Made by a program: the position numbers and the translations under genes. From Lepidodermella squamata (lineage: Eukaryota; Animalia; Gastrotricha), in NCBI GenBank assembly GCA_047495785.1, contig JBLDXI010000055.1, positions 806,001 through 870,000 of the forward strand: DNA of 64,000 nt, read 5' to 3'. Positions 21,101-56,442 of this stretch are shown piece after piece; position 1 is the first letter of the stretch, and every line of letters begins with the position of its first letter. The notes below the pieces were generated by a model. The model ran no database searches. It saw only the letters and a list, made by a program, of their open reading frames with translations, and was not told the origin of the DNA.

Positions 21101-23414
21101 CTTGCTCGAACTGTTTTTTTTTATTAGATCCTTGATCTTCGTGGGAGCGGCCAGCGTCGATGCTCGGGAGGTGACGGTGGTAGCGCTCGTCGCCGTACCG
21201 TAAATATGTAGAAATATAATGTAAAATGAGACACAGTAAGAAACACAGTAAGAAGTTTTTTATTCTGCTTCGGACAGCAAGTGGGAACCGCCATATTTGT
21301 CCCGAAAATGTCGCACCGTACGGCGAGGAAGAAACGATATTTCCACACAGTGAATATCACATAGATATTGAGTTGAAAATTTCATTGCTAGCAGATTCAT
21401 AGCAATTATTCGAAAACGAATCAAAACAGCACCAAACTGTCAGTGGGCTTAATAATTGCTCACTAAATCGAAGAATCGACCGAACAATTTCAGCATTATT
21501 TTTCTTGCAAGTCACAAAAAATAAGTCGCGTAAAACAGAACATGGAATCTTGAAATTTAAATACCTGGTATTTCTTCAATAATCGACGACTCACTTTGCA
21601 TGTGGCTAGAAGACCAAGCACTGTCTCTACTGGCAACAACAACACGAAATATCAGCAATCTCTAGTTTATTTCTCAAAACTCTTCCCTCATACAATTATT
21701 TACGAGCCATATTTATACGGTGTTCAGCCAATCAAAATCCGCCATTTGGCGTTACAATGACCTTCCAAGTAGTTTATCCGGTTCGGTCAAGGTCGACCGC
21801 TAATTTCAAACCATTTCATCAACAGGTGGCTTCGCCACATTGCATAACAGCAAAAACGAGACACCCTTCGTCTGTGATGTTATAAATTCCACCGCAGAAT
21901 GGACGCAAGAGATTAGCCCGACGATCAAAATACACATCTGGATTATTTACAATCAATGAGCCCGCTGTAGGGCAGGGTAATAGTCTGAACTCAATGTTCA
22001 AATGCTCAGCTCACGATATTGATATAAAGTTTGAAGATAGTGGAATTCACATCAACTAGAACAGATTTGGAAAGGCAGGTCTCAAGGTGGAGCGCGTCGG
22101 GAACAATGATGAAGCAATGTGAGGGTAGGCGAATTAACGGGGAATCATGCAGAAGCCAGCCAAGCGTTCCATCGTACTGCTCATCAGTGAGATCAAATTG
22201 TCGAGGAAGGCCAGCACCTTCAACGTCGTCCACGCAACGCCAAGGATTTTGGATGCTATGATGCCCACAAGCCATTCTTTTGTGGAGCATGACGTAATCG
22301 CAAACAAGAAGCAAATAAAAGCCGTATAGGATCGGCGTTTCGTCTTCGGCTTCAAACATGTTGATAACCAGTTCCTGAATTTCTTGAAGGTTTTCGGAAA
22401 AATAACGCCACAGTATCTGCTTTTCCTCGCCTCCCTTGTAAAGCGCTCAGGTATAGTCGTGTTCCAGACCAGCCTTCTCTTTTCTGTTAACGAGACCAAC
22501 GATCAATTGGGTGGTACCTTGACCAGCACGAGTACGATCAGGTGTATAGTCGATCGAATTTCGAATGTTAGTTTGCGAGTAGAAGGGAGCGTCTTTTACG
22601 GTTGCAGTCGTTTTCTTGGATGTAGTCAAGGTAGGTTCAAAGGTATGAGACCTGGTTCAAGGGCTGAAAATGCTGCGGCAAACTCAACTTCTCAAACTCG
22701 ATGGAATCTCCGAAAACAAGCTAAATAAACGCTAATAAACAGAATAAAACGACGGTTTAAGCGATATTCGTTCCATTTATTAAAGCTTTCCTTCTCAGTT
22801 TAACTAAGACGGGAGCCCGCTAAGCACTAAAGTATCGCACGCCGTCAAGGTGACGCAGTGAGGCTGCGGGAGCAGACCCTCATAAAAAGCTCAGGAGCCA
22901 TTAGTCACGATTTGTAGAGTTGGGTTGGCATGAAGGTAACAGCTCCCTTCGAATGAGCGTGGGGGCGTAAATACAACTTGGAAACCGCGTGGCTTAGAAT
23001 ATTTTCACGAGTGACGTCCATGGTTTTCACTAGACATTTGTAATTAATTGGCATTTATCGACTCTTTTGTCGATCAAATTTTTTAGTTCTTATTCATATT
23101 TCTTTATCTTTTTTAGTTTGAAAATGGACGACGAAGATTCAGCAGAATCGTGGACTGAAGCTCTCAGCCGAGTGTGGACCTGTCCGAGATGCGAACAGAC
23201 GATGGTCGTCTCAACAGGCGAGCGACTACGACACGAGGCGTCGTGCGTGGCCGGCCTGAAGGATACTGAGTCCTCGACCGCGAAAAAAGAAGCCGAAACC
23301 AGCGCGCCACCCAAGCCCGGCGCGAAACCGTTGTTTTGCGATGTTTGCAACAAAACGCTAGTCATGACAGCTAGCGAATTTCTACGCCACAAGTTGTCCC
23401 ATTCGTCAAGCTAA
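9195..23414 (+). CDS. DHX34: DEAH-box RNA helicase DHX34 (NMD factor)
   Basis: Motifs [47 protein letters not shown]; HA2/OB regions; DHX34-typical PHPTKGG..YNCL and terminal WTCPxC..H..C / CxxC..LRH motifs. Large introns at 9624-13358, about 15277-18759 and 19907-23116; micro-exon 14342-14363. The start codon is uncertain. Confidence 0.93.
11904..12332. mobile_element. MITE (Tc1/mariner-pogo type) with 125-bp perfect TIRs and TA TSD
   Basis: 11904-12028 is the reverse complement of 12208-12332. Flanked by TA on both sides; subterminal GGGGTGACTTTGG repeats. Confidence 0.92.
12570..12660. repeat. Degenerate tandem (ct)gatggcca motif array
   Basis: About six gatggcc/tggcca units in a row, typical of TE subterminal repeats. 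Confidence 0.6.
12998..13036. repeat. (ATGTT)n microsatellite
   Basis: atgttatgttatgttatgttatgttattttatgttattg. Confidence 0.85.
15655..16383 (-). mobile_element. Ginger-like (Gypsy-integrase-related DNA transposon) relic with intron-containing integrase
   Basis: The minus strand gives [20 protein letters not shown] and RARAPHQ|[16 protein letters not shown] (rve integrase core), split by a 53-bp GT-AG intron at 15954-16006. Terminus TGTCGTAGT at 15655 with aaactagtt subterminal repeats; frameshifted. Confidence 0.7.
16504..17070 (-). mobile_element. pogo-family DDE_1 transposase fragment running in frame into an OTU-like protease fragment
   Basis: One 189-codon open frame: [47 protein letters not shown], then [24 protein letters not shown]. 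Confidence 0.8.
17335..17570 (-). mobile_element. Ty3/Gypsy RNase H fragment (degraded)
   Basis: [24 protein letters not shown] and, after a frameshift, [23 protein letters not shown]. Confidence 0.8.
18049..18200 (-). mobile_element. Cys-rich CXC/tesmin-like finger, probably a transposase C-terminal relic
   Basis: [38 protein letters not shown]. Confidence 0.5.
20290..20490 (-). mobile_element. Crypton/DUF3504 (tyrosine-recombinase-derived, ZMYM/KCTD1-like) fragment
   Basis: EEEERW (frameshift) [36 protein letters not shown]. Confidence 0.75.
20490..20950 (-). mobile_element. pogo (POGK-like) DDE transposase fragment
   Basis: [42 protein letters not shown], with upstream [12 protein letters not shown]. 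Confidence 0.8.
22006..22629 (-). mobile_element. Transib/RAG1-like DDE transposase relic (in-frame stop)
   Basis: One frame with a single stop: [41 protein letters not shown]. Motif order and spacing resemble the RAG1/Transib core. Confidence 0.5.
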
Positions 23415-23549
23415 ACGTTATTTCTTTTATTGCTTTTGTTGTTGCTGATGAATAAAATGTTTGATTTATTGCCAAAACCTTCATTTTAAACGAAAATTTG
23501 GATAAATTTGAAATGGATTCTATGTAGATTTTAGTCCAATTCGCAATTG

Positions 23550-25644
23550 ATGGCTCTGCCTGAATCTAGTACTTTGTCGAAGAGCTTTCTTGTGAGTTTT
23601 GAAATAAGAGGAAACAATTTAAAAAATGTGTACATTTTTGCTTTTCAGGGTTTGATTTGTGCCATTTGCCAGGAGCAATACGTCCGTCCTGTCATCCTCC
23701 GATGTGGTCACACTTTTTGCGACCGATGCGTTCGCCAAATCGCAAAACGTATCCCAACACCTCGAAAGCCGACGGTCCCAATCAACGAACGTATCGCAGT
23801 GATGTGCCCAGAATGCCACGAGGAAGTTTTCTACCCCAAGGATGAAGATTTCAGACCAAATGCTGCTATTCAGCGGATTCTAGATCAAATGCAGGAACCG
23901 AAAACAGCTGGTGAAAAGCGGCTTGGAATGACGTGTGATCATATAGTGACAATTGACAGGAAATCGAAGTGCAACCATTGTGGCCAATCATTCTGCGAGG
24001 CCTGCTTACTTTGCCATAAAGAACGGCTCCGAATGGACATTGAATGGCTCGCAGGTGATGTAAGTCTTCGAGTTAACTGAACCTTCGATCCACCTTAATA
24101 TTGTTTCCTTATAGTACGTTGATCGCTTGAGGACGAGCATAGCATTTATGGAAAGTCATTCGGAATCAATCCAGGAAACTCTCGATAAAAAGGTTGCCGA
24201 TACTGTGGGCGAACTAAATGATTTCACTAATAATTTGGTGGCGAGATTCAGCGATTTTATCAAATCAAGACGAGAAGATTTAGAGGGGAAAGCTCAAATC
24301 GCAGCTGCATCTATTGCTTCTCAACGCGATTTTATACTGGAAGAGGCGAAGAAGCACCTCGAATCGATGGAAAATGATGTTTTGAAGCCGGTCGACTTTG
24401 TGCGGAACCAATCGTCGTTCAGCTTACAAATTGACGAGCTCGCAAATTTGAGGGAATTATTGGTTTCCAGGGATCATGAGGTTGAATCGTGGCGATGCAA
24501 GCTTAATTTGTTAAGTATTTTTTCTTAGATTTCCAAGGTCAGGAATTTCGCCTCCCGAGTTTCTTCCTTCGATCTTCACTACGCACACGCTGCATGGATG
24601 GAAACCTTTCCTGAACCGGAAATTTCAATTGGGGATGTTATTTTCTCCAAAATCGAAGACAATCACGAATTCTCTGATGCTATTGAGCTTCGAAGTGCAG
24701 TTGAAGCTCGGGATTTCGACAAAATTACTCATATTTTCAAACGCCCGAAGCTTTCAGAGGAAATCATGTTCGATCTGATGAAACCTCACTTGATCGGTTC
24801 TGTTAAATCGGACGATTTGGAATTATTCCAGTTATTGCTCAAAATTGCTAACGAGCCTAAGAAATCGAATACATCGAAAGTCTGCTCGGATTTTGAACTT
24901 GCCCATGTGGCTGCAAGCTCTGGTAGCCCGAAAGTTCTGGATTTTATTTTGACCGAATTTCCTGATTTAATCGACTCAAAAAGTGGAGATGGAAAAACAT
25001 TACTTATTTCGGCTTTAATGTCCGGAAAATTTGACTTGATTCATTACCTCGTCGAGGAGAAGTCATTTGACGTTAATTCAACTGAATCAAAGGAATCGCC
25101 GTTGATTTTCGCTATCAAAGAAAAGTATTACGACGCTGCTCAGTATCTCGTGATAAAGGGAGCTGATGTTACTGTAACTGACGAGGCTGGAAATTTACCG
25201 ATTCATTTAGCATGCCGAAATGAATCATTGGACGTAGTCAAGTCGATCTTAGCTATCGACCCATCGCAAATTGAGTCTCGCAATAGACCACCCTTCAACC
25301 GAACCCCCTTAATGGTCGCGTGTGCGACGGGTTGCTACGACATTGTGTGCTATTTGCTGGAGCAAGGCGCTGACGTAGATGCCGAAGACGGAAATTCATT
25401 CCTAGCGATTCATTACGCGGTTTCAAAGGGCGATTTAGTGATTTTGGAGAAGCTCTTTTCATCCTATCCGTATTTGTTGAATGTCACTCGCATGGGCAAA
25501 TCGATCGAACAGTCTGCGAATAAGCAATCTGGCATTATTTCGATGATTGACGGTCTACGGAAACGGCATGGCATGGAACGACCCGTTCAACCTGCTGTCA
25601 ATGCTGACGAACAAAAATTACCAAAACGACGCAGGACCAGCTAA
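23550..25644 (+). CDS. RING-Bbox-like-coiled coil-ankyrin protein, copy 1
   Basis: Four exons (introns about 23592-23648, 24060-24114, 24481-24528). RING CAIC..CGHTFCDRC..CPEC; CDH..CNHCGQSFCEACLLCH; ankyrin repeats (TPLMVACATG, AIHYAVSKG); ends KRRRTS. Confidence 0.9.
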
Positions 25645-25793
25645 ATGTTACTTTCAAGAGACTGTTTTCTCATTTATTTTTACCCTAATTTGTACATCAT
25701 TTTTACTAAAGATGTAAAATTTTTACTTGTGCAAAATAAATTAATTTGTTTCGATAAATAAATTGTTGACTGAGTTTTTTAGAAAATTTTTGA

Positions 25794-27892
25794 ATGGCAA
25801 CTAATATTAGCAGTAACAGCGATTCGAAGGCTAATTCCAATTTCACGGTAATATTTTTTCATGGTGATTCAATTGAAATTGACACGATTCCACCAGGGCT
25901 TGACTTGCTTGATTTGTAAAGAGCGATTTAACAAACCGGTACTGCTTCCGCAATGTGGCCATACGTTTTGCGAGAAATGCATCATGCCACTAGCGAGGCA
26001 GCCGCCGAATGGCAATGCGAACGCTAAGCGAGAGGCGATATGCCCAGATTGTAGTGTCACGAGTTGTATGCCAAAAGCTGGTTTTCGGATCAATTCGACC
26101 TTGCAAAACCTGCTCGAGCAAATATCGAAGTCAACATCGGATGATTCGCCTCTCGGCATGGCCTGTGACCATTTCATAGCGAACCAAAATAGGACGGAGT
26201 GCGGTCACTGTAAGAAGTCGTTTTGTGACGCTTGCCTCCTCTGCCATAAAGAAAGGCTGAGATTAGACATTGAATGGCTAGCAGGTGGGGTAAGCAAGTT
26301 CAATCTTCAAGTTACCTATGCCCAATATTTTACTAAATCGATATTTTAGTACGAAGACCGGCTGAAACAAAGTATTATGGCTCTTGAATCCGATAAAAAC
26401 GCTATTCAGGCTTCCATCGACCAAAAGTTGGCGACAGCTGAAGCTGGGATCGAGAAATTTGCGGCGGATCTGACAAATCAGTTCACAAATCTAGTAAATG
26501 CTGAGAAGGTGAAAATGATCGAGGCAATTCGACATGTTGCGCAGATGATGGATAAAAATCGCGAAGACCTTTTAGCTGAAATTAAGCAGAATCTGGAAAC
26601 GGTGATGAAAGACATTACGATGCCGGCTGAACGAATAATGAGACAATCGTCCTTTCGACTAAAAATCGACGAAATTGTTTCGATGCGAGAAACACTCGTC
26701 AAACGGGATAACCAAGTTTGATTGATACAATTTTCTTATTTTTTTATTCATATTTTTTTTGCTTTTCCAGGTTTTTCGCGCTAAGAATTTTGCCTCCGAT
26801 GTTTCAGTTACTAAATTGCGTTTTGTTCCAAACTTTCAAGTGACCGTCGATCCGGGAACCGGTAGTATAACAGCTCTCACCCTGGGGAAGGCTAACTATG
26901 TGATAGCCTTGCCATGCGGTAACTTTTCAGACATCGTTGAGCTTCAAAAAGCGATTGCTGCTCGCGATTTCGCTAAAGCTGGGTCTATTTTTCGGCGCCC
27001 AAATCTACCCGAGGAAATAATGCTCGACATGGTGAAGCCGCATTTACTTAGAGCAACTCAATCGGATGATGTTGAAGTTGTGGAAAATTTACTGGAATTT
27101 GTCGGTCATGTTAACTGTGAGACACCCAAACAAGCCGTCGCCGACTTCGAACTAGCCCATTTAGCTGCTAATCGGGGCAGCCTTAGAGTTTTAAAATCAA
27201 TACTAGCCAAATTTCCGGATTTTGTCTCTTCAAAACAAAGGACTGGGTCGACTTTACTGCAATGCGCTATTTCATCCGGCACTCTGGCGGTTGTTCAGTA
27301 TTTGGTATCGGAGAAATCGATGGATGTTAATCCGACTGATTGTAAAGACTCACCCCTCATTCAAGCGTGCAGAGCTTCGAAGTTCTGCATTGCTAAATTT
27401 TTGATTGATAAGGGAGCCGAAGTGTCGACTTTTGATGAGAGCAGTGGATTAGCCCCTATCCACTACGCTTGTCGAAATAAGAACTTGGATCTTGTCAAGC
27501 TGATTGCGTCTCGAGACATTGCCTCTATCAATTTCCGTGCCAAAAATAACACTCAATCTACGCCCCTGATGCTAACCAGATGTCCTGGTATAGTTTCTTA
27601 CTTACTGGAAAATGGTGCGAGCGCTCTAACTGCGAATAACAACGGCTACTCGGCCATTCATTACGCAATCGTGAGAGGTGATGCGGACGTTATCAAGAGA
27701 CTGGTTGCGCTGCGCCCTCTCGTTCTTAATGAAAATCCTAATGCTCAGTCCGTGGAAGAGTACGCAAGTATTAAAAAGCCCGAATTGGTTCAACTTCTGA
27801 AGACTCTTCGTGAACACCACTCCGTTGCATTGCCAGCGCCTACTGTCGCCAGTCCATGTGAAGATATTCCAATAAAACGCCGCAAAAACTAA
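25794..27892 (+). CDS. RING-Bbox-like-coiled coil-ankyrin protein, copy 2
   Basis: Same four-exon structure and motifs; ends KRRKN. Confidence 0.9.
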
Positions 27893-28248
27893 ATAGACTC
27901 GTAGACAGCGCACGAGAAACAGTTCCAGTCTACCTTTGGATAATATTTATCCTAAGAAGTTTTCTTTGCAATTTTAACTGATTCTGAATTGATGTTTTCT
28001 TGATGTTGAAATGAAGTAAAAAACTAAGCGAATTCGGCGATTAATTTTCATTGAAAATAAAGACGTCCTGATTTCTGACTATGCCACCGAAACGGAATAT
28101 GTTACCGAAAATACAGTTTTTTGTTTAAATACATTTTTACCGACTTCATCCGTTAGCAGGTGGCTTTTTTATTGAATTGTTCGTTTTTTTTCGCCGTAGT
28201 TCGCGATATTTAGCGTGATTTACCTGGAATCGCACTGGCCTTGTAAGC

Positions 28249-30353
28249 ATGACCTCGAACCAGTCGGAAACCATTACAGAAACAATTAGCAATTCATCCG
28301 TAAATTTAATTTTATTCCAACTCAAATTTTTACAAAGATTTTGTTCACAGGGCGTCAAGTGTTCATTTTGCGAACAGCCTTGCGAGCGCCCGATTTTTCT
28401 GCACCAATGCGGCCATCCTGCTTGCGAGAAATGTATGCGTCCCTTTGTTGACGATTTGATTGGGAAGCTGAATTCATCCTCTGCGGTTGGCCAAGTCGTT
28501 GTAAACTGCCCGAAGTGCTCCGCTCCTAATACCTGGGCGGATGCTAACACGGCAGTTCAAATTTTGCTTGCACAAATGTCGAAAACTGTTGAGAACAGTC
28601 AACTCGGAGTAGAGTGTGATCATTTTGTATCTAACGAACTTCGAATATGTTGTGAACATTGCAAAAAGTTGTTTTGTGATGCCTGTCTTCTGTGCCACAT
28701 GGAAATACTCAGAATTGAAATTACATGGCTGGCAAGCGGGGTAAAACAAATTCATTTTTTGCTAGTCAATATTCAAAATTGTCGCCTTATAGTATGAAGA
28801 CCGACTGAAAGCTAGCATCGCATCGCTTGAAGCTCAGAATAACTCAATTCATGCTACGATCAATGAAAAAGTGACTGCTACGGTTGCGGAGATCAAAAAG
28901 TGTGCCGAAGATACGATTCTAAAATTTACGAACCACGTCAACCAAAAAGCTGCTGAATTGATTGATTTCACAATGAAGATACCTGACGCGATCAACCTCG
29001 AGCGGAATGAATTGCTTGCTCAAGCAAAGGATCATATCGAAAACGCAACTAAGGACGTAGTACAGCCTGTTCAAAAGCTGTTGAAGCTCAATTCGTATCG
29101 CTGGAAGTTGAATGAGGTGATGAGCGTGCGTGAGATGTTAATAGACAGAGACAAGGAGGTAAAAACCCAAGTTCACATTTTTGCGTTCGGCATTTTTTTA
29201 AGCTGGATTTTTTCAGATTTGTCGCGCTGATAACTTTGCCGCGGATGTATCGGCGTCGACCTTGAAATTTTCGCCTGCTGAAATGTTGTCTTATAACGAC
29301 GAAAATTTCTTTGGAAAAGTTATTCACGAGAAAGTTACATTATCAGACCAAGGTTTTACTTCTGACTGGGTCGAGCTGGATAAAGTTGTTAAAACCCGTG
29401 ACTTTCATGCGGTTTCACGAACTTTAAGACGCCCAGATATTCCTGACGAGGCGGTAGTCGATTTGCTTGAAATACATGCAAGAAAATCAGTTGAATCGGA
29501 TGATGTGGAAGCGCTTGAAAAATTTATCGATTTGATGGATAAACTTGATGAGGAGATATCTCGACGTGCATGGGCCCGATATGAAGTAGCGAATTTAGCT
29601 GCAACGCTGGGCAGCCGCAAAATCTTGGAAAAATTTCTAGAAAAATTCCCGTGTTATGTAAACTTGCGAAACTCTTCAAACGAAAACCCGCTGATTTGTG
29701 CTATCAAGGCCGGGAATTTAGATATTGTGAAATTTTTGGTTGAAGATAAATCTGCTGATGTATCCATTCCTGGTACCAACATTTCACCGTTGAATGAAGC
29801 CATGAAATTGGGAAAATTTGAAATCGCCAAGTTTTTGATGGATTATGGGGCTGATGCTAACGTTTTCGATGATCAAGGATTTGCTCCTATCCACTATGCA
29901 TGCAAGTTCAAGTCTTTGGAAATGGTTAAAACGATTATAGCTAAATACCCAGATCACGTTAACTTGAAAATGAAAGAGGAACGCGAAAGAGTCCCGCTGA
30001 TGCATGGTTTTAACCCTGAAATATTGCAATTCTTTTTGGAACACGGTGCTGATGTTAATATTGCTGATGCCCAAGGATTCCTAGTTGTCCATTACGCTAT
30101 TATTTGGGAGGATGCTGTTGTTCTTGAGAAATTAATCAAAGAGAGGCCTCGTCTCTTGAGCGCGAAAGTCAAAGACCTAGCCTTGGAAAACAGTGTGAAA
30201 TGCAAACCCGCCATGCTCGAGCTGATCAAATCGCTGCGGACGCGCTTTGGAGGCATTTTCCTGATCAGACCAACGGTGGTAGCACCAAAGGTGGTTGCAC
30301 CAACGGTGGTAGCACCAAAGGTGGTAGCCATTGCAAAGCGCCGAAAACTGTGA
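28249..30353 (+). CDS. RING-Bbox-like-coiled coil-ankyrin protein, copy 3
   Basis: Same structure, with a PTVVAPKVVA duplication near the C-terminus; ends KRRKL. Confidence 0.9.
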
Positions 30354-30512
30354 TGAAACAATCTGGTTTCCACCTGCAAACAACAGGAACGAGATGCTTG
30401 ACTTTCGAAAATCGTGATTAAATGTTAACGCAACCTTGCTGGATCTGTGCAAATCTATGCAACTAAATGTGAAAATATCTGTGCAAATATAATAATCTTG
30501 GAGCTGTGCAAA

Positions 30513-31364
30513 TGTCGTAGTCTAATAAGCAATTTAGTTGGATTGGGAATCTAACTAACTAGTTTTTTGCCAATTTGCTTAACCCTTAGCCGCCGAAGAC
30601 GTGTACACGCGTTAATTCCGGAGAAAATTCACCGTGGTCGGAGCATTTGGGCTATCGAACCCATTGTTGCGTCATAAATTATGATAAATCAATAGCAAGA
30701 AACAAGCACTCCCCGAAAATCCAAATTTTCAAAGCCATTCCGACCAGGTCGAAAATAGTGAGAAAAATTTCAAGTGACTTGTTAACACCTCATGAAAACG
30801 CGTTAACACGTCATAGCAACGGCAACCCAGGTAAATTTCTTCTGAAAAAGAGGTTCGGCTGTCAATCTAAGGCTAAATGTAAGACTTTCTGCCGACTCAG
30901 AATTTGATTTTAGCCTCTTCTTGATTTTCTGGGATTTTCTGAAAGGTGCTCTGAAAGGGTTAAAAACCTAGTTTAGTATTCCGTAATAGTTGATCCCATC
31001 CCAAAATTTTTTATTAAGTGGCAAAATATTACGGAATTTCCAGGAAATGTTGAGAACCCAGACCTGAAGAATGTCGGGAGTGGTTTACTTGTCCTTCTGC
31101 CTCGATAAACGGGAATGGCTCAACCATAAAGAAATTTGATTTCACCGAGTTGAAATATGGCGCAAAAATAGCCTAAAATGCATTTTTAACCGTGTTTGAC
31201 GCTATAAATTAATTCTGGTTGTTCAAAACCTAAGCCTCTCTCCAGGCAGGTAATAATTTGCGCAATAATTGTGTTTGATTGCCTCATAAACTAGTTTTTA
31301 AAAAAGTTGCTCATTAAACTAGTTGGATTCTTAATCCAACTAAATTGCTTATTTGACTACGACA
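30513..31364. mobile_element. Non-autonomous Ginger-like element (TGT..ACA termini, 4-bp TSD)
   Basis: About 50-bp imperfect TIRs (tgtcgtagtctaataagcaatttagttggatt / aatccaactaaattgcttatttgactacgaca) with CAAA on both flanks. Same terminus as the relic at 15655. Confidence 0.8.
30583..30959. mobile_element. piggyBac-like MITE nested in the Ginger-like element
   Basis: TTAA|CCCTT ... AAGGG|TTAA; the TIR match is short. Confidence 0.5.
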
Positions 31365-31549
31365 CAAATATGTGTAATATTTGCGATAGTGTATTATTTT
31401 TTACTCTGCTGAGTGCTATTGACTCAAGAATAAATTGGAACGTTGGATTGTCATTACCAATTGAATTATTTTTTATAACAATTTCTTCCCAGAATTCAGC
31501 GCTAATTTTGACAAACTGACATTGACTATTTCTCAATTCGTCTGGAATC

Positions 31550-33611
31550 ATGGCTTTAAGCCATTCAGATATCTTCCCTGCCGTAGACAGCAATATCTCA
31601 GCCGACGTAAGTCACTCGAAATTTCAGATTTAAATGTATTTTAAACTTCAAATAGCTGCTGAGTTGCTCAGTGTGCCGAAAGCTTTACGAGCGGCCGATT
31701 GTTCTGCCCCAGTGTGGTCATACCTTCTGTGAGAAATGTGTTCAATTAGCTGAAAGTACAGAGGAAAGTATCGAATCTGTTCAGGCTGAACAAACCGTTG
31801 TTATCTGCCCTGATTGCCGTACTTCCAGCATTTTCCCGCATGAATCAGGATTCAAGCTGAACACTGTGGTACAAAGGATCCTTGACCGATTGCGAAAACC
31901 AGTGGCTGACAACAGGCAACTTGGAATGATGTGTGAGCATATAGTATCATCTAAAAACCGAACTTGCTGCCGGCATTGCCAAAAATCGTTTTGCGACGCT
32001 TGCCTTTTGTGCCACAAGGAAAAACTGAAAATTGACGTTGCTTGGTTGGCCAGCGGGGTAAGAGTCCATTCGAAAAATTTCGTAAATTTGAAGGAATTCT
32101 CGAATATTTTTAGTATGACGATCGATTGAAAGCCAGTATAGCTCTGCTTGAGGGCCACAGCGATTTTATCCATGCTACTATTGCAGATAAAGTGGTTGAT
32201 ACTGTCGCTGAAATTAAAACATGCGCTGCAGATGTGATTCGAAAATTCACAAATTCCATCAATTCGAAAATGATTGAAATGATCGAATCTACGCAGAAGA
32301 TAGCTGACGATGTCATTGTTGAGCGCAACGAGCTACTACTACAGGCCAAGCATCACCTCGAAACAGCTACCAAAGACATTTCCTGTTCAGACGCTTCTGC
32401 AACAGAATTCGTTTCGCTCGAAATTAGATGAAATAATCAGCATGCGAGAACTTTTGACGGACCGTGACGCGGAGGTAACACTCGAAATTTTAAATTTTCT
32501 GTAGGTTCCGATTCCATTAGAGAATTTTATTTTTCAGATTTGTCGGGCCAGCAATCTTGCTGCTGACGTGTCTTCATCGAAGCTTCAATTTTTGCCCGCC
32601 GATATTACTGCCGGTGCTGAGCTACGATTCGGCGAAGTTATCTACGAAAAATTCAGAATTTCTGACCGTTACACGTCTGACTTTGTTGAGTTGGGAAAAG
32701 CTATTACAACCCGGGACTTCGAAAGGGTCTCTCAAATTCTGAGGCGTCCTAATATCCCCGATGAGTCGGTAGTCGATTTGCTTGAGCCACATGCAAGAAA
32801 AGCGGTTGAATCTGACTATGTCGAGGCCCTTGAAAAATTCATTGAGTTGACGGATAACTTTGAATTCGAAATATCTCTGAGAGCATGGGGTCGCTACGAA
32901 ATTGCAACAACGGCCGCGAAATTGGGCAGCCGCAAAACTTTGGAGAAGTTTCTAGAGACTTTCCCGCGTTATGTAAACTCGAGAAATTCGTCAAACGAAA
33001 ACCCGCTGATTTGTGCCATTAAAGCTGGGAATTTGGAAGTTGTGAAATATTTGGTTGAAGATAAATACGCAAATGTTTCCCTTCCTGTAGCAATCAAATT
33101 AGGCAATTACGAAATTGCCAAGTTTTTGATGGATTATGGGGCTGATGCTAACGTTTTCGATGAGAAAGGTCTCGCCCCTATTCATTACGCATGCAAGGCC
33201 AAATTGTTGCCGATTGTCGAAATGATAATCGCTAAATATCCAGATCATGTTAACCTGAAGACAAAGTCGCGGCATGTAATGGTTCCGCTCATGCTTGGCT
33301 GTGACGTTGACATCATTCGCTTTTTATTGGAACATGGCGCTGACGTTGATATTGCTGATAGCCTTGGGTACCTAGCTGTCCACCATGCTATTATAATTCA
33401 CGGCAATTCTACTGCTTTGGAGAAATTAATCGTAACAAGGCCTCATTTGTTGAATGCAACTCTGGCTGGTCGTAATCTGGAGTCTTTTGCTAAAACCAAA
33501 CCTGTTATATTAAAACTCATCGCTTCTCTACGCGAGCGCTTCGCTATTCCTGCTCAGCTTTCATCATCGTCTGCTGGTATCGATAACGCTGCGAAGCGTC
33601 GAAAGATCTGA
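31550..33611 (+). pseudogene. RING-Bbox-like-coiled coil-ankyrin copy 4, frameshifted in exon 3
   Basis: Near 32380, 'gac att t cct gtt cag' versus copy 5 'gac gtt tcg ctt cct gtt cag' (5 nt missing) gives a stop at 32431. The ankyrin exon is still open but has an 8-aa deletion. Confidence 0.75.
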
Positions 33612-34372
33612 AAAGGTTCAATCTTGATCGTAACTCGAACTAAGATTCATGATTGTTTTGTTTTGTTGTTGTTTTTTGTAATTATCTATGTATGTACCCC
33701 TTTCTCTAACAATTCGGCGAGTCGCAGTGACGAACACGGCGACAATCAGCTTGAAGCATCTCTCGAAACTATCTCATGATATAATCGAATTTTTTGATGC
33801 AAGCATCATTTTAATCGGAAATAAATTGCTTTTTTAGAATTTGATTACTATATTGACAAGTTCTTAAATAAACGGTCTCTAGCGTTACCTGACCATGGAG
33901 TGCCCAACTGCGGTGGTTTTCTGTATTTTCTCTGCCGGTGCTCAGGTCTTTCATCTGCTCTGCCTGTCTTTTTCTCCCGTATTTTCTTTGACTGTGTTAC
34001 TCGTTACTTTGGCCCAGGAGAAAGACAAGAACTGAATGACCGATGATTTTTTTTAATTTAATTTATTTTCAGATATCCGATATTAGTGATTTTAAGTTTA
34101 ACTTAGTGGAGCCTCATTGGTTGGCTCAAAAAGCGCGCGACACGTGCCGCTTTATTTATTTCTTCACGATCACTTATCGCGCGTTTTCTAAAACTAAAAA
34201 CTATCAACCTATTAAAAATTGTGGATTCACTAGTTCGACTAAGCAACCACAAGCTGTTAAACTTCTCAAAAGATTACGCTGCCCGTTGCTCACTCAATTT
34301 CACAATATTGTTTTTCGCCTCAGATTTCAGCAATAAGCTAGGAAATCTTGGCTAGGAAAATTAAGCTTATTT

Positions 34373-36441
34373 ATGGCTTCGAGTCAGTCTGTAGACAGCA
34401 GCATTTCGGCTACTGTGAGTTTAATCAAATTTGAATTAGTCTTGAATAATTTTCAAGGGTATTCATTCAGCTGTTGAACTGCTCCGTATGCAAAAAGTTT
34501 TACGACCGGCCTGTTGTTCTGCCTCAGTGCGGTCACACCTTCTGTGAGAAATGTGTTCAATCGATCGCAAAGAAGCAATTCTCATCAGGCAGAGGTGCTG
34601 TTAAGGGTGACAACTCTTTTGTGATTTGCCCTGATTGCAACATTGTCAATATTACTCCGGCCGGAACTGGGTTCACGCGGAACACAGCGATACAAGGCAT
34701 CTTGCAGCAGTTGCATAAAACGGCCTCAGATGGAACGGAATTAGGAATGGCGTGTGAACATGTCGTGCCAACTGAGCATCGAACTGAGTGCGGCCACTGT
34801 AATAGGTCGTTTTGCGACGCCTGCCTTCTTTGTCACAAGGAAATGTTCAAAATCGATATTGCGTGGTTGGCCAGCGATGTAAGATTTCCGGAATGACTTG
34901 GTTTACTCATTTCATTTTGACTATATTTAGTACGAAAACCGATTGAAAGACAGTATAGCATCGCTAGAAAGCCAGGGTGACTTAATTAAGGCTACTATCG
35001 ACGAGAAGAAGACCACAACTCTTGCTGAGATCAAAAGATGTGCAGAAGATGCGATTCGAAGAGTCACAGACCACATCAACTCCAAAGCGGCTGAAATGAT
35101 CGATTTTACCCTAAAGAAAGCAGAAGAACTTCGCGCTGAGCGCAATGAGCTGCTAAAACAGGCCAGGGAACACCTCAAAACTGCTAGCAAGGACGTTTCG
35201 CTTCCTGTTCAGACGCTCTTGAAGCTGAATTCTTTTCGTCTAAAATTGAGTGACGTAATCAATATGCGAGAGTGTCTGATCAATCGAGACGAGGAGGTTA
35301 ATTTCTTCAAATTCAAGAATCATATTAACAAAGCTAGATTTTCCAGATTTGTCGTGCCAACAATTTTGCATTTGATGTTTCCTCTTCAGAGCTTCGCTTT
35401 TTGCCTGCTGAGGCGAATACTTGCGGTGATGAAAGCTTGAAATTTGGTGAAGTTGTTTTCGTAAATGTAAGGGTAGCTGACCACTATTACTCGGATTGTG
35501 TTGAGCTGGAGAAAGCTGTGAAAGTGCGAAACTTTGACCGCTTCTCGAAAATTCTGCGGCGCCCTGACATTCCCGATGAGTCGGTTGTTGACTTGTTGAG
35601 TCCATACGCAGTTGCAGCAGCTGAATCTGATGACTTGGAAGCGCTTGAAAAGTTCATTCATCTTTCGTCTGCGCTTGATAAAGAAATATACCTGAAAGCA
35701 TGGGCCGATTATGAGATCGCTATAATAGCCGCAACGCGGGGAAGCCGAAAGGTATTGGAGAAATTTCTCGAAACTTTTCCGTGTCACATCAACACGAGGA
35801 ACTCTTTCGATGAAAATCTGTTGATGTGTGCTATCAAGGCTGGAAACTTGGAGATTGTGAAGTTTCTCGTTGAGGATAGGTCTGCGGAGGTTTCCATTCC
35901 GGGTACCAACATACCGCTGAATGAAGCCATCAAATTGGAAAGATTCGAAATTGCCAAGTTTTTGTTGGATTATGGGGCTGACGCTAACGTTTTCGATGAT
36001 AAAGGTCTTGCTCCTATTCATTATGCTTGCCGATCTAATAATCTTGGAATTGTCGAAGCGATTATAGCGAAATACCCTGATCACATTAACTTGAAAACAA
36101 AAGAAGGTGGGACTGTCCCGCTGATGCATGGATTGCACGTAGACATCATCTCGTTTCTTTTGGAGCATGGTGCAGACGTTGATATCGCTAATTTCAAAGG
36201 GCACCTCACCGTTCACTATGCCATAACCTTTAGCAAGCCTGATGCTTTGGAGAAATTAGTTGAAGAAAGGCCTCACCTATTGAATGCAACTCATGGTGGT
36301 CTAACTCTTGAAGCATATGCTCAATCAAATCCTGACATGCTGAAGTTAATCAAATCTCTCCGCGAGCGTTTTCCCGTTGCCGGTCAGGTACCCCAATCTG
36401 ATGTGAGCATAAACGGCGCAGCAAAATGTCGGAAAATCTAA
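34373..36441 (+). CDS. RING-Bbox-like-coiled coil-ankyrin protein, copy 5
   Basis: Same four-exon structure, intact; ends KCRKI. Confidence 0.9.
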
Positions 36442-36729
36442 CCATGAATCTTCATTTTATTGCAAATTTTTTTAACGCGATTGTCTGTACTCATCTAACT
36501 TTGCTATCTCGAGCGCCCGTATCATGTGTCTATCTTATCTATCTGTTTAATATTTGTCGGGAGGCGTCTTCTGGAATCAGGGTCGTTGGCCACTGCTGTA
36601 TTATATTGTGGGTCACATGAAGTTTGATCACATTTTTGAACACAATAATTCTTTTAATCAAGAGTTTGGTGGTTATTTTCGTAGGTTGGTCTTCCTATAC
36701 CTTGATTAATACCTTGAAGTTCGCGAACC

Positions 36730-38547
36730 ATGGCCTCCAATCAGACAAATTCCGCAGACGCCGCAGTCACCTTACGCAGTAATAGCTCGGTAAATTGTTT
36801 TACTTGAGAGGCAATCAACCGACGTTTTCCAATTTTGAAGTGCTGCCGTTGCAAACAGCTTTACGAGCACCCTATCGTTTTGCCTCGGTGTGGCCATGCC
36901 TACTGTGAGAAATGTGTTGCCTGTGTTGCAAAAAAGGTCGTTCGTAGATCAAGCAACCCTGATCTGATCGATCTTATCGGCGTGTATTGCATTTCTTGCC
37001 AACATGACAAGATTTTACCTGAGGCACTTGTTCAAACTGTCCTGCATAAGCGGCCTATATCGGCGGCGGAGGACAGCCAACTTGGATTCTCGTGTAAGCA
37101 TACGGAATCAACCGAGCACAGAAATTACTGTAGCCATTGCGGCCGATGGTTTTGCGACTCATGTGTTGTGGCTCACAAGGAGAAACTCAAAATCGACATT
37201 GCATGGATTCACGGAGCGAGTGAACGCGAAAGCTGCTGAATGCATCGCTGGCGTCGAAAGTGGGGTCGAAGAAGCCATTGTTGAACGCAATCAGTTGCTT
37301 AGCCGGGCTAAGGACCATCTTGAAGATGCCAACAACGACGTTGCACTGCCTGTTCAGAAGTTGTTGACGACAAACTCGTTCCGATTGAAATTAGCTGATA
37401 TCATCCGAATGCGACAGGACTTGATCGATAGAGACTCTGAGGTGATTATTTCATGATTTTTTCGCCGTAATTCAGGCGGATTTTACAGATTAGTCGAGCC
37501 AATGTCACCGATTTGACTACATCGAAGTTTAATTTTCATTTTTGGAGCGCAGAGAATATGGAACTCTATGACGGCTTCTCTCCTGAGATGGATTTTTCCT
37601 ATGAAAATTCTGATTCATCCGATGAAGATTTCTCTGATAAAATTATGCTTGATAAAGCTGTCAAAAGCCGCAATTTTGACAATTTTTCCCGCATTTTGAA
37701 GCGTCCTGGTATGCCTGATGAGGCGGTTGTCGATTTGTTGCAATTTGTTGCTGAGTCGGACGATGTTGAAGCGTTTGAAAAAATCGCTGATCTTATCAAT
37801 AATGATCTGGATAACGATATTTCACTGCAAGCTTGGATCGATTTTGAGGTAGCCACGGCAGCGGTAAAATGTGGCAGCCGAGGAGTCTTGCAACAATTTC
37901 TAGCGAATTTTCCGTGTTTCGTAGACTCAAGGAATTCGTTGAATGAAAATCCTTTGATTTGCGCTGTCCGTACTGGAAGCCTTGAAATGGTGAAATTTTT
38001 GGTTGAAGAAAAGTCTGCCAATGCCTCTGCTCCTGGTACCAACATCTCGCCGCTAAATGAAGCCATGAAATCGGTGAAATTCAAAATTGCCAAGTTTTTG
38101 TTGGATTATGGAGCCGATGCTAACGTTTTCGATGACAAAGGTCTCGCCCCTATTCATTATGCCTGCAAATTCGAGTCGTTGGACATGGTGAGAGCGATAG
38201 CAGCGAAATTCCCTGGCCATGTGAACCTGAAAACAAAATAATCACCCGATGAATTGGTCCCGCTGATGCTTAGGCCTCAGCTCGAAATTGCCCGTTTTCT
38301 GCTGGACCACGGGGCAGACGTGAATATGACTGATGCTAAAGGGTTCCCGATCATCCATCATGCTGTTTCATCTGGCTATTCTGCGGTTGTCGAAGTCATC
38401 ATTGAAAAAAGGCCTCACATTTTGAATTTGGTTCTCGAATACGCCGCAAAGTCGAAACTAGAAGTGATGAAATCGCTTTGCGAGCGGTATTTGAGCAGAG
38501 GAAACGCTCAAGTTGGGAAGCGTCGAAGATTACTCGCTGATTGTTAA
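36730..38547 (+). pseudogene. RING-Bbox-like-coiled coil-ankyrin copy 6, disrupted
   Basis: A deletion near 37207 removes intron 2 and the first part of exon 3 with a frameshift. Premature TAA at 38239-38241 in the ankyrin exon. Confidence 0.85.
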
Positions 38548-38958
38548 TTTTTGTTGCGTTTTCATCTGATTTTTCTGAGTGATTTTTCATCTACAGGGTG
38601 TTTCATAAGATGGGGAATCTACCAGAAACATTTGTACGATTTTGCCGAAGAAAACCCGAAAAAAACGGTGGTTATTAATGATTTTCAGTTTTTTACGTGT
38701 CTTAACTTGATTGTTTTACGAGTTTCATAGCGTATCAGCATTTCAAAAACAGTCAGATCGACCAAGAAATACCCTATCATACGGGCGCCGTCGTTTACAA
38801 ATTATTTTTACAAAATTTCGGTCATTTGAGACAATGGTCGCCGTCCTAAAAAATCATTCTAGAACGCTGAAAACAGGTCTACTTAAGGCCTTCCCACAAA
38901 CTCGTTTCTTTTTTTTTCTCATGCGTATGCGAGTAAACACATACACATACAGCAAAAA

Positions 38959-39769
38959 GCATACAGCCCCCGTTCACAAACTGATTTCTTTTCTCCTTGT
39001 ATGTGATTTTTTTCTGGCCGAAGAGGCCACTGAAAAAAATGACCAACTTCGATGGGGCTCGAACCCAGTCCGCCTGTTAAACAGGCCGGTCAATAGCAAC
39101 GGCACTATGTTGCCATCGTATTTATCCGTCGCTATAAAGTCGAAGATTAATGATTCATGCCCGCACTTGACCCATAAAACGCGGATAACTTTTATATAGA
39201 TATTAGCAACCAATAATTACACTGTAAAAAAAAGTTCGCTATTTAGCACTTGGCATTTAGCACGGCCGGTTATTTAGAATAAAAAATAAAACAATTTCGA
39301 ATCGCTAAATACCAGAAAACTATTTAGAATAATCGGGGGTTATTTATCCTGAGTAAAATAGGGCAAAATGGGGTTTAGAGTGCTTAAAAATAGGTGACTA
39401 AGAAAACAGGCCTTTTTATACTTTTTACCCAAAATTTGGTATTTATCACCGATAATTTCATTTTTCGGTAATTAGAAGCTTCAATTTAAATTTTTAGGCT
39501 AAATAGGAGGCTCCCAGGGTCCTAATTGCCCGAGTAAAAGTCGGTTATTTAGCGGCTAAATTGCGAACTTTTTTTTATAGTGTAGGCTTTTTATAGCGAC
39601 GGATAAATACGATGGCAACATAGTGCCGTTGCTATTGACCGGCCTGTTTAACAGGCGGACTGGGTTCGAGCCCCATCGAAGTTGGTCATTTTTTTCAGCG
39701 GCCTCTTGGGCCAGAAAAAAAATCACATACAGGGAGAAAAGAAATCAGTTTGTGAACGGGTCTGTATGC
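38959..39769. repeat. About 180-bp inverted repeat pair (38959-39138 / 39590-39769) containing a tRNA-like segment
   Basis: The arms are near-perfect reverse complements. They contain a gcctg-tttaa-caggc hairpin and GGGTTCGAGCCC (T-loop/B-box-like) followed by a T-run. Confidence 0.85.
39220..39582. mobile_element. CACTA/EnSpm-like MITE
   Basis: TA|CACTGTAAAAAAAAGTTCGC ... GCGAACTTTTTTTTATAGTG|TA, with internal tatttag subterminal repeats. Confidence 0.8.
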
Positions 39770-40273
39770 GATTTTTTTTCGCCAACACATACGACCCCGG
39801 CAAAAAACTTATTACAAATCACATACACATTTTTTCATACGAGTATGTGCGCAGACCTTTAGTAACTTTTTGAGCCGCATATTTTGGGGCCTAAATGACA
39901 TTAAAAAATTTAAATTGCCGAATTTTTAGTTAAAAATGTGATTTTCGGAATCTGCGATTTTTTAACCCTAGAAATGAGTTGATAAACACTTCGATTCAAA
40001 AAAAATTATTTTTCGCTAATTGCCGGTTACGGTTAGCTAATTGAGAGAAAAACCGGTAACCAGTGTGCAGAGCGTCATTGATTACCTACTGGGTTGTGTT
40101 TTTATTGCGAAATCGAAATTTTCAAGGGGGCAACCATTGTGTTGAGAATTTCTCAGTTTGTCAGTTCGAATTTGTGAACGACGGCGGCCGTATGATTCTT
40201 GTTACCTCAATTATAGGAGGAATGAATACCCGTTACGATCTTGGCTATTTTTTGTTTAGATTTTACTAAATAA

Positions 40274-42361
40274 ATGAAGTCAGCTGCCTCGAATGGTGCT
40301 GTTAATTCATCATTAACTGATGCACTGGTTAGTACTTGGTGACTAAATATTCAAACGTAGTATACTTGATAGTATGATTTCAGGGTTTGATTTGTTTAGT
40401 CTGCAAGAAGCGTTACGAGCGGCCAGTTTTACTCCCGCGATGTGGCCATACATTTTGCGAAAACTGCGTCAAACGCACTGCGAAGCCGACAATTGTCAGA
40501 AAAGCCGACCCAACCTACGGCCATTTAGAGGTCTACTGCCAGAAATGCGAAACTCCAAGCTTCTTCAAAAAAGACGAGCCTTTCAAAATCAACGCAGCAG
40601 TCCAGGACATTTTAAGCCGATTACCGGAGAAAACTGGCGCTGAGGATTCGCCACCGGGTACGGTTTGCGATCATATCGTTACGGGCAAAACTGAATGTGG
40701 CCACTGTAACTTGTCGTTTTGCGAGCCGTGCCTAGTTTGCCATAAAGAAATGCTGAAAATCGATATCGAATTTTTATCGCTCGACGTGAGTTTATTCCAT
40801 TTTAATCGCCGAATTTCGTTAAAAATTAAAAAAAAATTTAGTACGAGGATCGCTTGAAATCAAGCATTGAACGACTTGAAAGTGGTCGTGACAAATTGAG
40901 AGCGTCTATCGAGAATAAACTCGCCAATTTAGCTGCTGATATCAGACAAGTTGGCGATGATTTAATCGCCAAAATAACGGAATCAATCAAAAACGAAGTT
41001 GGCCGAATGATCGACGATCTCGGGCATGTGATGGAAGACTCGCTGAAAGAGCAAGACAGCCTAATACAATCGGGCAAATTGCACCTGGAAACGGCGACGA
41101 AAGATGTCAGAAAGCCTTCTCAGGCGTTGCTGCGGAAGAATTCGTTCCGTCTCGAACTCGATGAAATGGTCAATTTACGGCGCTTACTTGTCGAAAGAGA
41201 CAAAGAGGTTGACAATTTCTGTCTCATAATTTAATTTTTTTTTTTAATTTTGAATTTCAGATCTGCGACGCTAATAATTGTATAAGCCGTTGGGAAGCCG
41301 CCAAACTCAAATTTTCTCCCGCCTGTGACCTAATATTTAGCTCTGAAGATCCTGAAAACATCGAAATCGGCAGGGTTGTTACGGAAATGCCTGATAAAGA
41401 GGAGAAATTTGCTGAATTAGTCGAATTTGATAAGGCCGTGGCTGGCCGTAATTTCTGCGAGGTTTTCAGGGTCCTGAAACGGCCCGGAATCCCGGAAGAA
41501 ATATTGATAAACGTTATGCTGAAGCCTCAAATGATAGAAGCAGCCGAATCTGATGATGTTGAGCTGCTGGGCCAGCTGTTCGAAATCGCCGATCAGTTGG
41601 AAATCCCAGAGAAAACGTGGCTAGAATTCGACCTGGCCCATCGCTCGGCTGGTCTGGGCTCTAACGCAGTTCTTGATTTGATTTTAACAAAATTCCCGAA
41701 TTTTTTGAATGCCGAAAGCAAAGCTGACCTTACGCCATTGCATTGCGCTGTTAAGACGGGGAACATTGAGACAGTGAAATATCTGTTGCAGGAAAAATCA
41801 GCCGAACCGAATCCACAGGGTCGGAATAAAGTTTCTCCCTTGTGTTTAGCCATGAATTTGACCTACTTCGACATCGCGAAAATTCTGATTGAGAAAGGCG
41901 GTGATTTGTCGGCCGTTGATAACATCGGTTACGCGCCGATTCACTGGGCGTGTCGTCATAATTCGCTGGAAATGGTTAAACTTATTCTTGGTAAGCAGCC
42001 CGGCCACCTTGATTTGAAGGCTGACGGCGGAAATGGTGTCACTCCGCTGATGATCGCGACTGGGGTTGACGTGATGACTCATCTGCTTGACATTGGCGCT
42101 AATTTCGATTTGACCGACAAGCTTGGATATCGGGCGATTCACTACGCCATTTCGAGAGGTGACGCTGATTCAGTTGAAAAATTGCTCACCGAAGCGCCGA
42201 ATCTGCTCAATGTGGTTCATAACGGGAAGAGCCTGGAAGCGTGTGCCTCGAGTAAACCGGCTGTTTTGGGAGTTATCGCATCTTGCCGCAAACGGCTTCA
42301 TACTCTTCGCTCGCCTCTTGCGGAAAATGATGATGGGAATCGAAAGCGTCGCCGAATTTGA
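40274..42361 (+). CDS. RING-Bbox-like-coiled coil-ankyrin protein, copy 7
   Basis: Same four-exon structure, intact; ends RKRRRI. Confidence 0.9.
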
Positions 42362-51130: not shown

Positions 51131-51256
51131 TATCGCCGTTTTGTTTCAGATAAGATCAATAATCTTCCAGGCCAAAAAATTTGAATGAGAGGCGTAAAAT
51201 TAAACACGTGTTCGAAAAATCGTGAAAAAAATGCTGTCACAATTTTTATTCGCAAC

Positions 51257-52592: not shown

Positions 52593-52921
52593 TTTCTCCC
52601 CGGTTAGTTTCGATTAATGTAGGAAAAGAGGAAATAACGAAGATGCTATGCTGATATGCTATGCTAGTTTCGAAAACAAACAATGAATTATGACAAAAAC
52701 ATGAACGACTGATTCACATCTGAACACGTGCCGATCAAAAATATGAAGAACTCAATTTCCTCGTTTTATTGTCCGTCGTCTCTTCTCTCCAACTAGGGTG
52801 GGAAAACTGATAAAAATCCCTGCTTTCGCGGTTTAAAGGCGGAAAACGGAAATAACTTCACTATATTGTAGCTTAGGCTATCAACGAATCCGTATCCAGG
52901 TATGACTCTCAAATGAAAATT

Positions 52922-54191: not shown

Positions 54192-54245
54192 CTATACCAT
54201 GAAAATAAAAAAGTTCACAACAATTAATCAATATCTCAATTTTAT

Positions 54246-56228: not shown

Positions 56229-56300
56229 AGCAGAGTGGCGCAGTGGAAGCGCGCTGGGCCCATAACCCAGAGGTCTGTAGATCGAAACTACGCTCTGCTA
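56229..56300 (+). tRNA. trnM: Initiator tRNA-Met (CAT)
   Basis: AGCAGAGTGGCGCAGTGGAAGCGCGCTGGGCCCATAACCCAG..GATCGAAAC..CTCTGCTA; A1 and the GATCG T-loop are diagnostic of eukaryotic tRNAi. Confidence 0.97.
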
Positions 56301-56370
56301 ACTGTCCAACTTTTTCTGTTATTTGTATTCGAAAATTATTTTGCAAAATTAAAAAATTATCGGAGACATT

Positions 56371-56442
56371 AGGCCCAGGCGGGAATTGAACCCGCGATCT
56401 TCTGTTTACGAGACAGACGCTCTACCACTAAGCTACTGAGCC
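56371..56442 (-). tRNA. trnT: tRNA-Thr (CGT)
   Basis: GGCTCAGTAGCTTAGTGGTAGAGCGTCTGT-CTCGTAA-ACAGAAGATCGCGGGTTCAATTCCCGCCTGGGCCT cloverleaf. Confidence 0.95.

Follow-up and report, generated by a model that had tools for sequence, protein, structure and literature searches.

A tandem array of seven genes occupies positions 23550-42361 of the plus strand in a 64,000-nucleotide stretch of the genome of the gastrotrich Lepidodermella squamata (GenBank assembly GCA_047495785.1, contig JBLDXI010000055.1, positions 806,001 to 870,000; the whole stretch is hereafter called the window). With a probability that we put at about 60%, these genes are tandem paralogs produced by birth and death that encode TRIM-like RING E3 ligases of about 640 amino acids, long maintained and sub-functionalised, regulatory and probably nuclear in role, and not fast-evolving pathogen sensors. 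The N-terminal half of the proteins appears to be homologous to that of the TRIM or RBCC (RING, B-box, coiled coil) proteins, with a RING, a divergent B-box2-like motif and a helical region of about 120 amino acids that is probably a coiled coil, and the C-terminal half consists of ankyrin repeats. The family is a real, lineage-restricted variant of the TRIM-like E3 ligases, and its combination of domains is rare.

Gene structure and transcription of the array

The original prediction, which was made from the letters of the window without database searches, described seven co-oriented paralogs, and this is confirmed from two directions. The list of open reading frames (ORFs) contains a RING ORF, a helical ORF and an ankyrin ORF in constant order seven times, and an independent DNA repeat search recovers the segment with the second zinc motif (repeat family D3) seven times at a spacing of 2.1-3.6 kb. 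Gene models were obtained by enumerating GT-AG introns compatible with the reading frames and by comparing the paralogs. The four-exon plan proposed earlier holds for the five intact copies (1, 2, 3, 5 and 7), but copies 4 and 6 are broken, which had been missed. The introns are of the GT-AG type, 48-63 nt long and in phase 0. Exon 1 is a Ser/Asn-rich segment of 14-19 codons; exon 2, of 390-411 nt in the intact copies, holds the RING and the zinc motif; the helical exon 3 is exactly 366 nt in every intact copy; and exon 4, of about 1.1 kb, holds the linker or caps and the ankyrin repeats. Uninterrupted proteins are encoded by all five intact copies, with the lengths given here:

Copy 1: 23550..25644, plus strand, intact, 644 aa; exons 23550-23591, 23649-24059 (RING and zinc motif), 24115-24480 (helical) and 24529-25644 (caps, six ankyrin repeats and KRRR tail); gene model with Pfam RING and Ank matches
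Copy 2: 25794..27892, plus strand, intact, 644 aa, transcript-verified; exons 25794-25847, 25897-26289, 26350-26715 and 26771-27892
Copy 3: 28249..30353, plus strand, intact ORF, 647 aa; exons 28249-28299, 28351-28740, 28793-29158 and 29217-30353
Copy 4: 31550..33611, plus strand, probable pseudogene; exons 31550-31606, 31656-32057, 32114-32474 and 32538-33611
Copy 5: 34373..36441, plus strand, intact, 636 aa; exons 34373-34414, 34471-34878, 34931-35296 and 35347-36441
Copy 6: 36730..38547, plus strand, pseudogene; exon 1 at 36730-36789, RING exon from 36841
Copy 7: 40274..42361, plus strand, intact, 640 aa; exons 40274-40327, 40384-40785, 40842-41207 and 41261-42361; Pfam RING, and Ank_2 with an E value of 4e-39

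In copy 4, exon 3 measures 361 nt instead of the 366 nt of the intact copies; a DNA alignment with copies 3 and 5 places the five missing nucleotides between 32379 and 32380, and the exon is therefore frameshifted. Protein alignment shows that about nine amino acids are also absent from ankyrin repeats 2/3 of this copy. Copy 6 carries an out-of-frame deletion of 199 nt with its junction at 37206/37207, as seen in a DNA alignment with copies 4 and 5. It takes away the last part of exon 2, the whole of intron 2 and roughly 45 codons from the start of exon 3, so that exon 2 is fused to the middle of exon 3; further along, the copy is interrupted by an in-frame stop (38239-38241), and its C-terminus is shortened. 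Between copies 6 and 7 lies an element of the foldback type, or one like a miniature inverted-repeat transposable element, at 38969-39760; its inverted arms (38969-39138 and 39590-39760) match with 98% complementarity and flank a spacer of about 450 nt. On the upstream side, the last exon of a DHX34 gene (Pfam zf-C2H2_DHX34) ends 136 nt before the start of the array. A role of the array proteins as secreted effectors was weighed but rejected, there being no hydrophobic N-terminus.

Read evidence spans 23401-29400, and thus copies 1 and 2 and part of copy 3, and comes from two public runs, one from 2015 that is flagged "RNA?" and one DNA run from 2024. Contigs from the 2015 run skip precisely the three introns predicted for copy 2, of 49, 60 and 55 nt (25846>25896, 26288>26349 and 26715>26771, all GT..AG), and a single 434-nt RNA contig runs from exon 2 through the entire exon 3 into exon 4 with no mismatches. 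The RING, helical and ankyrin exons of copy 2 therefore form one mRNA, with contigs joining exons 1-2, 2-3 and 3-4, and the possibility, raised at the outset as one that would have overturned the prediction, that RING and ankyrin exons are not joined is excluded for this copy. Copy 1 has low RNA depth in the same run. In the 2024 DNA run, the copy 1 region (23400-25800) is represented by two haplotypes of about equal depth that differ at many sites, and the region of copies 2-3 (25800-29400) by one haplotype at about half the depth of copy 1. The second haplotype over copies 2-3 may be absent, structurally different or more than 10% diverged.

Protein domains, relatives and comparable ligases

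The C3HC4 RING had been assigned correctly in all copies. Pfam zf-C3HC4, zf-RING_UBOX and related models score above cut-off, and the eight ligands of the pattern C-x2-C-x11-C-x-H-x2-C-x2-C-x(19-25)-C-x2-C are invariant in all seven copies; the zinc ligands are also invariant across 20-21 family members. For the atypical zinc motif that follows, the residues proposed earlier are likewise invariant in seven of seven copies, but the proposed spacing of x6-8 was off by one, and the real one is x(7-9). The motif accordingly reads C-x-H-x(7-9)-C-x-H-C-x3-F-C-x2-C-x3-H in the window copies, and over 20 family members the form C-x-H-x(7-12)-C-x-H-C-x3-F-C-x2-C-x3-H is invariant.

An AlphaFold (AF2) model of exon 2 of copy 2, built with a 21-sequence alignment, has a mean predicted local distance difference test score (pLDDT) of 88.6. 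Its best matches in the PDB are the RINGs of TRIM2, TRIM21, TRIM25 and TRIM69, several of them in complexes with ubiquitin-charged E2 (E2~Ub; Foldseek, E 1e-5), and it aligns over 122 columns with the RING-B-box structure of TRIM21 (5olm). In the model, the region of the zinc motif forms a small beta-hairpin and a helix that runs into a long helix, which begins directly after the motif. When the motif was compared by hhalign with 14 canonical B-box2 segments, a probability of 70% and an E value of 4e-5 were obtained with the Cys/His columns in register, and in the exhaustive profile search described below it coincides with the B-box that Pfam assigns to TRIM-NHL, TRIM-FN3 and other TRIMs. On this evidence the second zinc motif is probably a divergent B-box2, although Pfam itself does not recognise it. 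A TRIM-like nature of the N-terminal module as a whole is supported, its best relatives in both sequence and structure being TRIMs.

The sequence encoded by exon 3 is poor in Pro and Gly and 31-39% charged, and its local heptad a/d contrast lies above that of shuffled sequences (z 1.5-2.5) in five of five intact copies; a coiled coil is plausible. At the C-terminus, Pfam detects Ank_2/Ank with E values of 1e-21 to 1e-40. The earlier count of about five to six repeats can be refined to six plus caps, from an AF2 model and the repeat register. This model, of exon 4 of copy 2 (pLDDT 83.5), shows continuous helix pairs from residue 52 to residue 350, which make up a solenoid: two degenerate hairpins on the N-terminal side, then six ankyrin repeats, then a cap. 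What had been described as a helical linker (RRPxIPxE, SDDxE) is indeed helical, but it is not a separate element, since it is predicted to be part of one solenoid with the ankyrins. The best structural matches of the model are DARPins (designed ankyrin repeat proteins) at the top, and also espin, FEM1B, ankyrin-1, the ankyrin repeats of MIB1, and gankyrin. Fold searches with it in AFDB and the ESM-Atlas return generic ankyrin proteins, such searches being blind to a combined RING and ankyrin architecture. In all copies the C-terminus reads K-R/C-R-K/R followed by one or two further residues.

For a search of relatives outside the window, a HMMER profile of the seven RING/zinc exons was run against 1.84 billion representative proteins. 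It gave no match below 1e-30 and 23 below 1e-10, and the best full-length matches were TRIM-PRY/SPRY concatenates, TRIM-NHL and TRIM-FN3 proteins. None of the best 150 RING/zinc-motif relatives from this set matches a profile of the linker and ankyrin exon, and no annotated protein with the same architecture was found in the exhaustive search of the 1.84 billion proteins. The strict zinc motif occurs in 17 matches, nearly all of them exon-sized ORFs, which come from the Logan runs SRR23086389 and ERR10802333 and from the metagenomes ERZ23486787, ERZ27332993 and ERZ27333047. In word-based protein searches, the ankyrin exon of copy 1 matched generic ankyrin proteins alone, at identities of no more than 36-38% and without a RING in any of them, and a 463-aa family member from metagenomic contig L009 matched only itself; a metagenome DNA-pattern scan with the seven-copy alignment returned one locus, with the RING only. 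The architecture is nevertheless not unique to this genome, as three metagenomic contigs carry it too, in tandem arrays of their own, and a fourth shows it in part:

Contig L004: RING/zinc 1521-2015, helical 2045-2359, ankyrin 2465-3400; same architecture
Contig L008: RING/zinc 1445-1957, helical 1996-2370, ankyrin 2351-3301, then another ankyrin gene; same architecture
Contig L009: four or more copies in tandem, in which the linker motif (..D..F..L..P.LP......L) is kept
Contig L002: partial

In a tree of the RING/zinc exon, which is unrooted and rests on a short alignment with long branches, the seven window copies group together (96/95; 95% of bootstrap trees), as do six metagenomic members in a clade of their own (92/90). 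The expansions look lineage-specific because the two sets of copies form separate clades, and the earlier proposal of a lineage-specific family is supported by the absence of ankyrins from the 150 best RING/zinc relatives and by the lack of a published natural TRIM-ankyrin class in the open-access texts searched.

A related gene lies upstream of the array within the window, at about 2620-5800. It encodes a RING (2620-2829), the same zinc motif (ORF 2852-3109: CQHKGEREHCVHCARDFCPSCKVSH) and a helical region, as do the array genes, but it differs from them in a long acidic region, an unrecognised C-terminus and the lack of ankyrins. Since this gene has no ankyrins, the N-terminal module is common to at least two C-terminal types in the lineage. 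A homologue that is 40% identical, P0184, is found in metagenome ERZ23486787. The contig that carries P0184 (L005 1-4461, scaffold_6110 of ERZ23486787) also encodes an outer-arm dynein heavy chain, for which human DNAH5 scores lower than the chains of Chlamydomonas and Tetrahymena and further protist chains labelled "putative". This likeness to protist chains hints that the host of the relatives is a flagellated protist and not an animal.

Comparison with known ligases places the array proteins closest to the TRIM/RBCC family (for example TRIM2/3 with NHL and TRIM21/25 with PRY-SPRY), with which they share an N-terminal RING, a two-zinc motif, a long helical region and a C-terminal binding domain, ordered in one polypeptide as the RNA joints of copy 2 and the continuous ORFs of five copies show. 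Some TRIM groups, too, are typically organised as tandem multigene arrays. The differences are an ankyrin solenoid at the C-terminus, a putative B-box that diverges far enough to escape Pfam, in which C-x-H replaces C-x2-H, C-x-H-C is invariant and the final His pair is lacking, and a helical exon without homology to the TRIM coiled coil. The Ank_2/Ank C-terminus falls outside the recognised TRIM classes (PRY/SPRY, NHL, COS-FN3, PHD-bromo, MATH, ARF, filamin, transmembrane or none), as had been claimed from the outset, and the word "ankyrin" is absent from Marin 2012 (PMC3503706). No paper describing a natural class with RING, B-box, coiled coil and ankyrins was found in about 8.4 million open-access full texts, which cannot prove absence.

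The C-terminal half fits the definition of an ankyrin-repeat protein, a tandem solenoid of 33-residue helix-turn-helix units, and several ubiquitin ligases combine such repeats with other modules. In the ASB proteins and FEM1B (the latter among the best ankyrin matches), as probably here, the ankyrins are the substrate-recognition module of a ubiquitin ligase, but in those proteins the RING is missing and contact with a cullin complex is made via SOCS or VHL boxes, whereas the array proteins carry the RING in the same polypeptide. No Pfam match to a SOCS or VHL box was obtained in any array exon, and the proteins end in a short basic tail. MIB1/2, plant XB3/XBAT and BARD1 do combine ankyrins and a RING in one protein, and the MIB1 ankyrins are a structural match. 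In MIB and XBAT, however, the ankyrins precede a C-terminal RING, whereas the array proteins have the RING first and the ankyrins last; BARD1 has added BRCT domains, and none of the three has a B-box or coiled coil between the ankyrins and the RING. Matches to the Pfam family RING_XB3-XBAT31 score 16-29 bits against a cut-off of 50. The array proteins belong to none of the ASB/FEM1, MIB/XBAT and BARD1 types.

One parallel to the overall design is artificial. In bioPROTACs, in which TRIM21 is joined to a synthetic binder or DARPins serve as binders, an RBCC effector half is likewise combined with a swappable binding domain, and DARPins are the top ankyrin matches of the array proteins; the array fusion differs in being natural, old and multiplied into a gene family. 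TRIM21 in which the PRYSPRY is replaced by a foreign binder still ubiquitinates and degrades its new targets (PMC10694607), and a modular TRIM-binder design is workable because such engineered fusions keep ligase function.

Age, selection and competing explanations

The copies are as highly diverged as first described, with 30-64% amino-acid identity. In a tree of exon 4, the adjacent copies 3, 4, 5 and 6 form one clade (100/99) and copies 1 and 2 a pair (95/94), with terminal branches of 0.24-1.2 changes per site; in trees of exon 2, the RING exon of copy 3 has a branch length of 1.9-2.0 and that of copy 6 is likewise long-branched. Synonymous divergence (dS) is saturated for nearly all copy pairs, and the ratio of nonsynonymous to synonymous divergence (dN/dS, or omega) is therefore not computable for most of them. 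In the closest trio, whose pairs have dS of 1.1-2.3, the lowest omega belongs to the helical exon (0.11), followed by the ankyrin exon (0.16-0.18) and the RING exon (0.29-0.37). Between the two alleles of copy 1, the variants listed comprise 22 synonymous and 4 nonsynonymous changes, none of the latter in the ankyrin repeats; 15 further variant sites across the stretch are not part of these counts. The duplicates are thus ancient and under purifying selection.

Ankyrin positions 2, 3, 5, 13, 14 and 33, the equivalents of the DARPin binding face, have a mean pairwise identity of 0.23 over the six repeats, compared with 0.51 elsewhere. None of 5000 permutations gave a value as low, and in the close trio the figures are 0.52 and 0.73. 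The original prediction had proposed a codon-based comparison in which positive selection on the concave ankyrin face would count as support, and had pointed to an antiviral or anti-transposon arms race. Neither such selection nor an arms race finds support: omega is well below 1 in the helical, ankyrin and RING exons of the trio, the copy 1 alleles differ mostly synonymously, dS is saturated and the variability of the face is unspecific. The combination of young duplicates and positive selection on the binding surface that marks rapidly evolving immune TRIM clusters, of the TRIM5/22 and finTRIM type, is not found here.

On the reading favoured here, that of long-maintained regulatory ligases, the RING would recruit a charged E2; binding of E2~Ub is expected because the ligands are conserved and because the domain resembles active TRIM RINGs. 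The helical region would dimerise the protein, by analogy with TRIMs. The concave face of the ankyrins may bind a protein substrate that differs from paralog to paralog, given the general function of ankyrins, the pattern of divergence and the precedents of ASB and FEM1, and the conserved basic C-terminal tail may send the protein to the nucleus.

Several points weigh against this reading. The ubiquitin-ligase activity is putative, as it is predicted from sequence and structural likeness. The residue after the last RING Cys, which we take to be the "linchpin" position of RING E3 ligases, is Arg in most outside relatives, but within the array pseudogene copy 4 alone has it. For the B-box assignment, Pfam zf-B_box gives no match to the zinc motif at E<=0.1, and a sequence-profile search of the PDB with the motif alone gives spurious zinc-finger matches and no B-box. 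For the coiled coil, hhalign of exon 3 against TRIM coiled coils (TRIM_CC) gives a probability of 1%, and so no homology, and exon 3 has no global 3.5-residue periodicity. The basic tail resembles a nuclear localization signal (NLS), but a role in nuclear import is conjecture, and the metagenomic relatives lack the tail. Divergence of the binding face fits different targets for each paralog, yet structural constraint alone would give the same pattern in any ankyrin family. Finally, within the reads over copies 1-3, copy 2 is the only copy shown to be spliced and expressed, and no RNA covers copy 3 over 28201-29400 in the 2015 run, the only one examined.

It is possible, though unlikely, that the genes encode diversified receptors of an immune or anti-transposon system, in which the ankyrins would recognise a pathogen or transposon protein and the TRIM-like half would ubiquitinate it or signal, much as TRIM5 and TRIM21 do with SPRY. 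Such a role would suit the birth-and-death turnover of a tandem array in which two of seven copies are wrecked, the independent expansions here and in the metagenomic relatives, and the concentration of divergence at canonical binding-face positions; the single haplotype at half depth over copies 2-3 also hints at strong haplotype divergence. However, dS saturation between the copies leaves no young duplicates, omega of 0.11-0.37 and the 22:4 ratio of the listed copy 1 allelic variants, with its unchanged ankyrin repeats, point to constraint, surface variability is expected in any ankyrin family, and no immune-signalling domains are linked to the array. A broader version, in which the TRIM-ankyrin genes, expanded separately in related uncultured eukaryotes that may be protists and not animals, would form an ankyrin-based repertoire of intracellular recognition, a natural "DARPin library" on a TRIM-like effector that senses viruses, transposons or symbionts and is independent of vertebrate TRIM-SPRY, is doubtful.

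We consider it improbable that the proteins are catalytically weak or non-ubiquitin scaffolds, resembling SUMO ligases or the nuclear-body proteins PML and TRIM28, with the RING serving for assembly and the ankyrins for recruitment. The loss of the Arg after the last RING Cys in all intact copies, set against its retention in most outside relatives, is what such scaffolds might show, as are the NLS-like basic tail and the long RING-exon branch of the intact copy 3. Many active RINGs, however, lack an Arg linchpin; in the intact copies none of the eight RING zinc ligands is lost, nor is the hydrophobic residue of the first pair, C-x-[IVF]-C, and the RING model superposes on active TRIM RINGs solved with E2~Ub. 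That the array is a decaying relic whose intact ORFs no longer function, as two broken copies of seven and the silence of copy 3 in the 2015 run could suggest, is very improbable and already disfavoured, given five ORFs of about 640 codons that are intact despite saturated synonymous divergence, omega well below 1, a strong synonymous excess between the copy 1 alleles among the variants listed, and a copy 2 that is spliced and expressed.

Neighbouring genes and significance of the family

Downstream of the array, an NmrA/HSCARG-like gene occupies 43318-44352. Its named relatives are all bacterial, with 45-50% identity, and its best match overall, at 60%, is a short JGI metagenome contig; judging from these matches, a bacterial source for the gene is possible. 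The minus strand at 50280-55015 then holds a tandem group of three to four genes resembling carbohydrate sulfotransferases (Pfam Sulfotransfer_2, PF03567), every one of which is divided between two ORFs. Two tRNA-Met genes (CAT) and one tRNA-Thr gene (CGT) are found at 56229-56443 and 60301-60372, the first tRNA-Met and the tRNA-Thr standing head to head 70 nt apart. Between them, at 59370-60170, a single long ORF encodes the N- and C-terminal domains of a glutathione S-transferase, which by our impression may be of the Xi or glutathionyl-hydroquinone-reductase type.

With the array, the TRIM-like ligases gain a naturally occurring class that ends in ankyrins, and there is an indication that, beyond the well-studied animals, the effector half of RING, B-box and helix is combined with more than one kind of recognition domain. 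The zinc motif probably offers a divergent form of the B-box that escapes present domain models. Should each paralog turn out to have its own target, the family would parallel engineered E3-DARPin degraders in nature and could supply compact, modular scaffolds for degraders; if its diversification was driven by pathogens, it would represent an independent invention of TRIM-type intracellular immunity.

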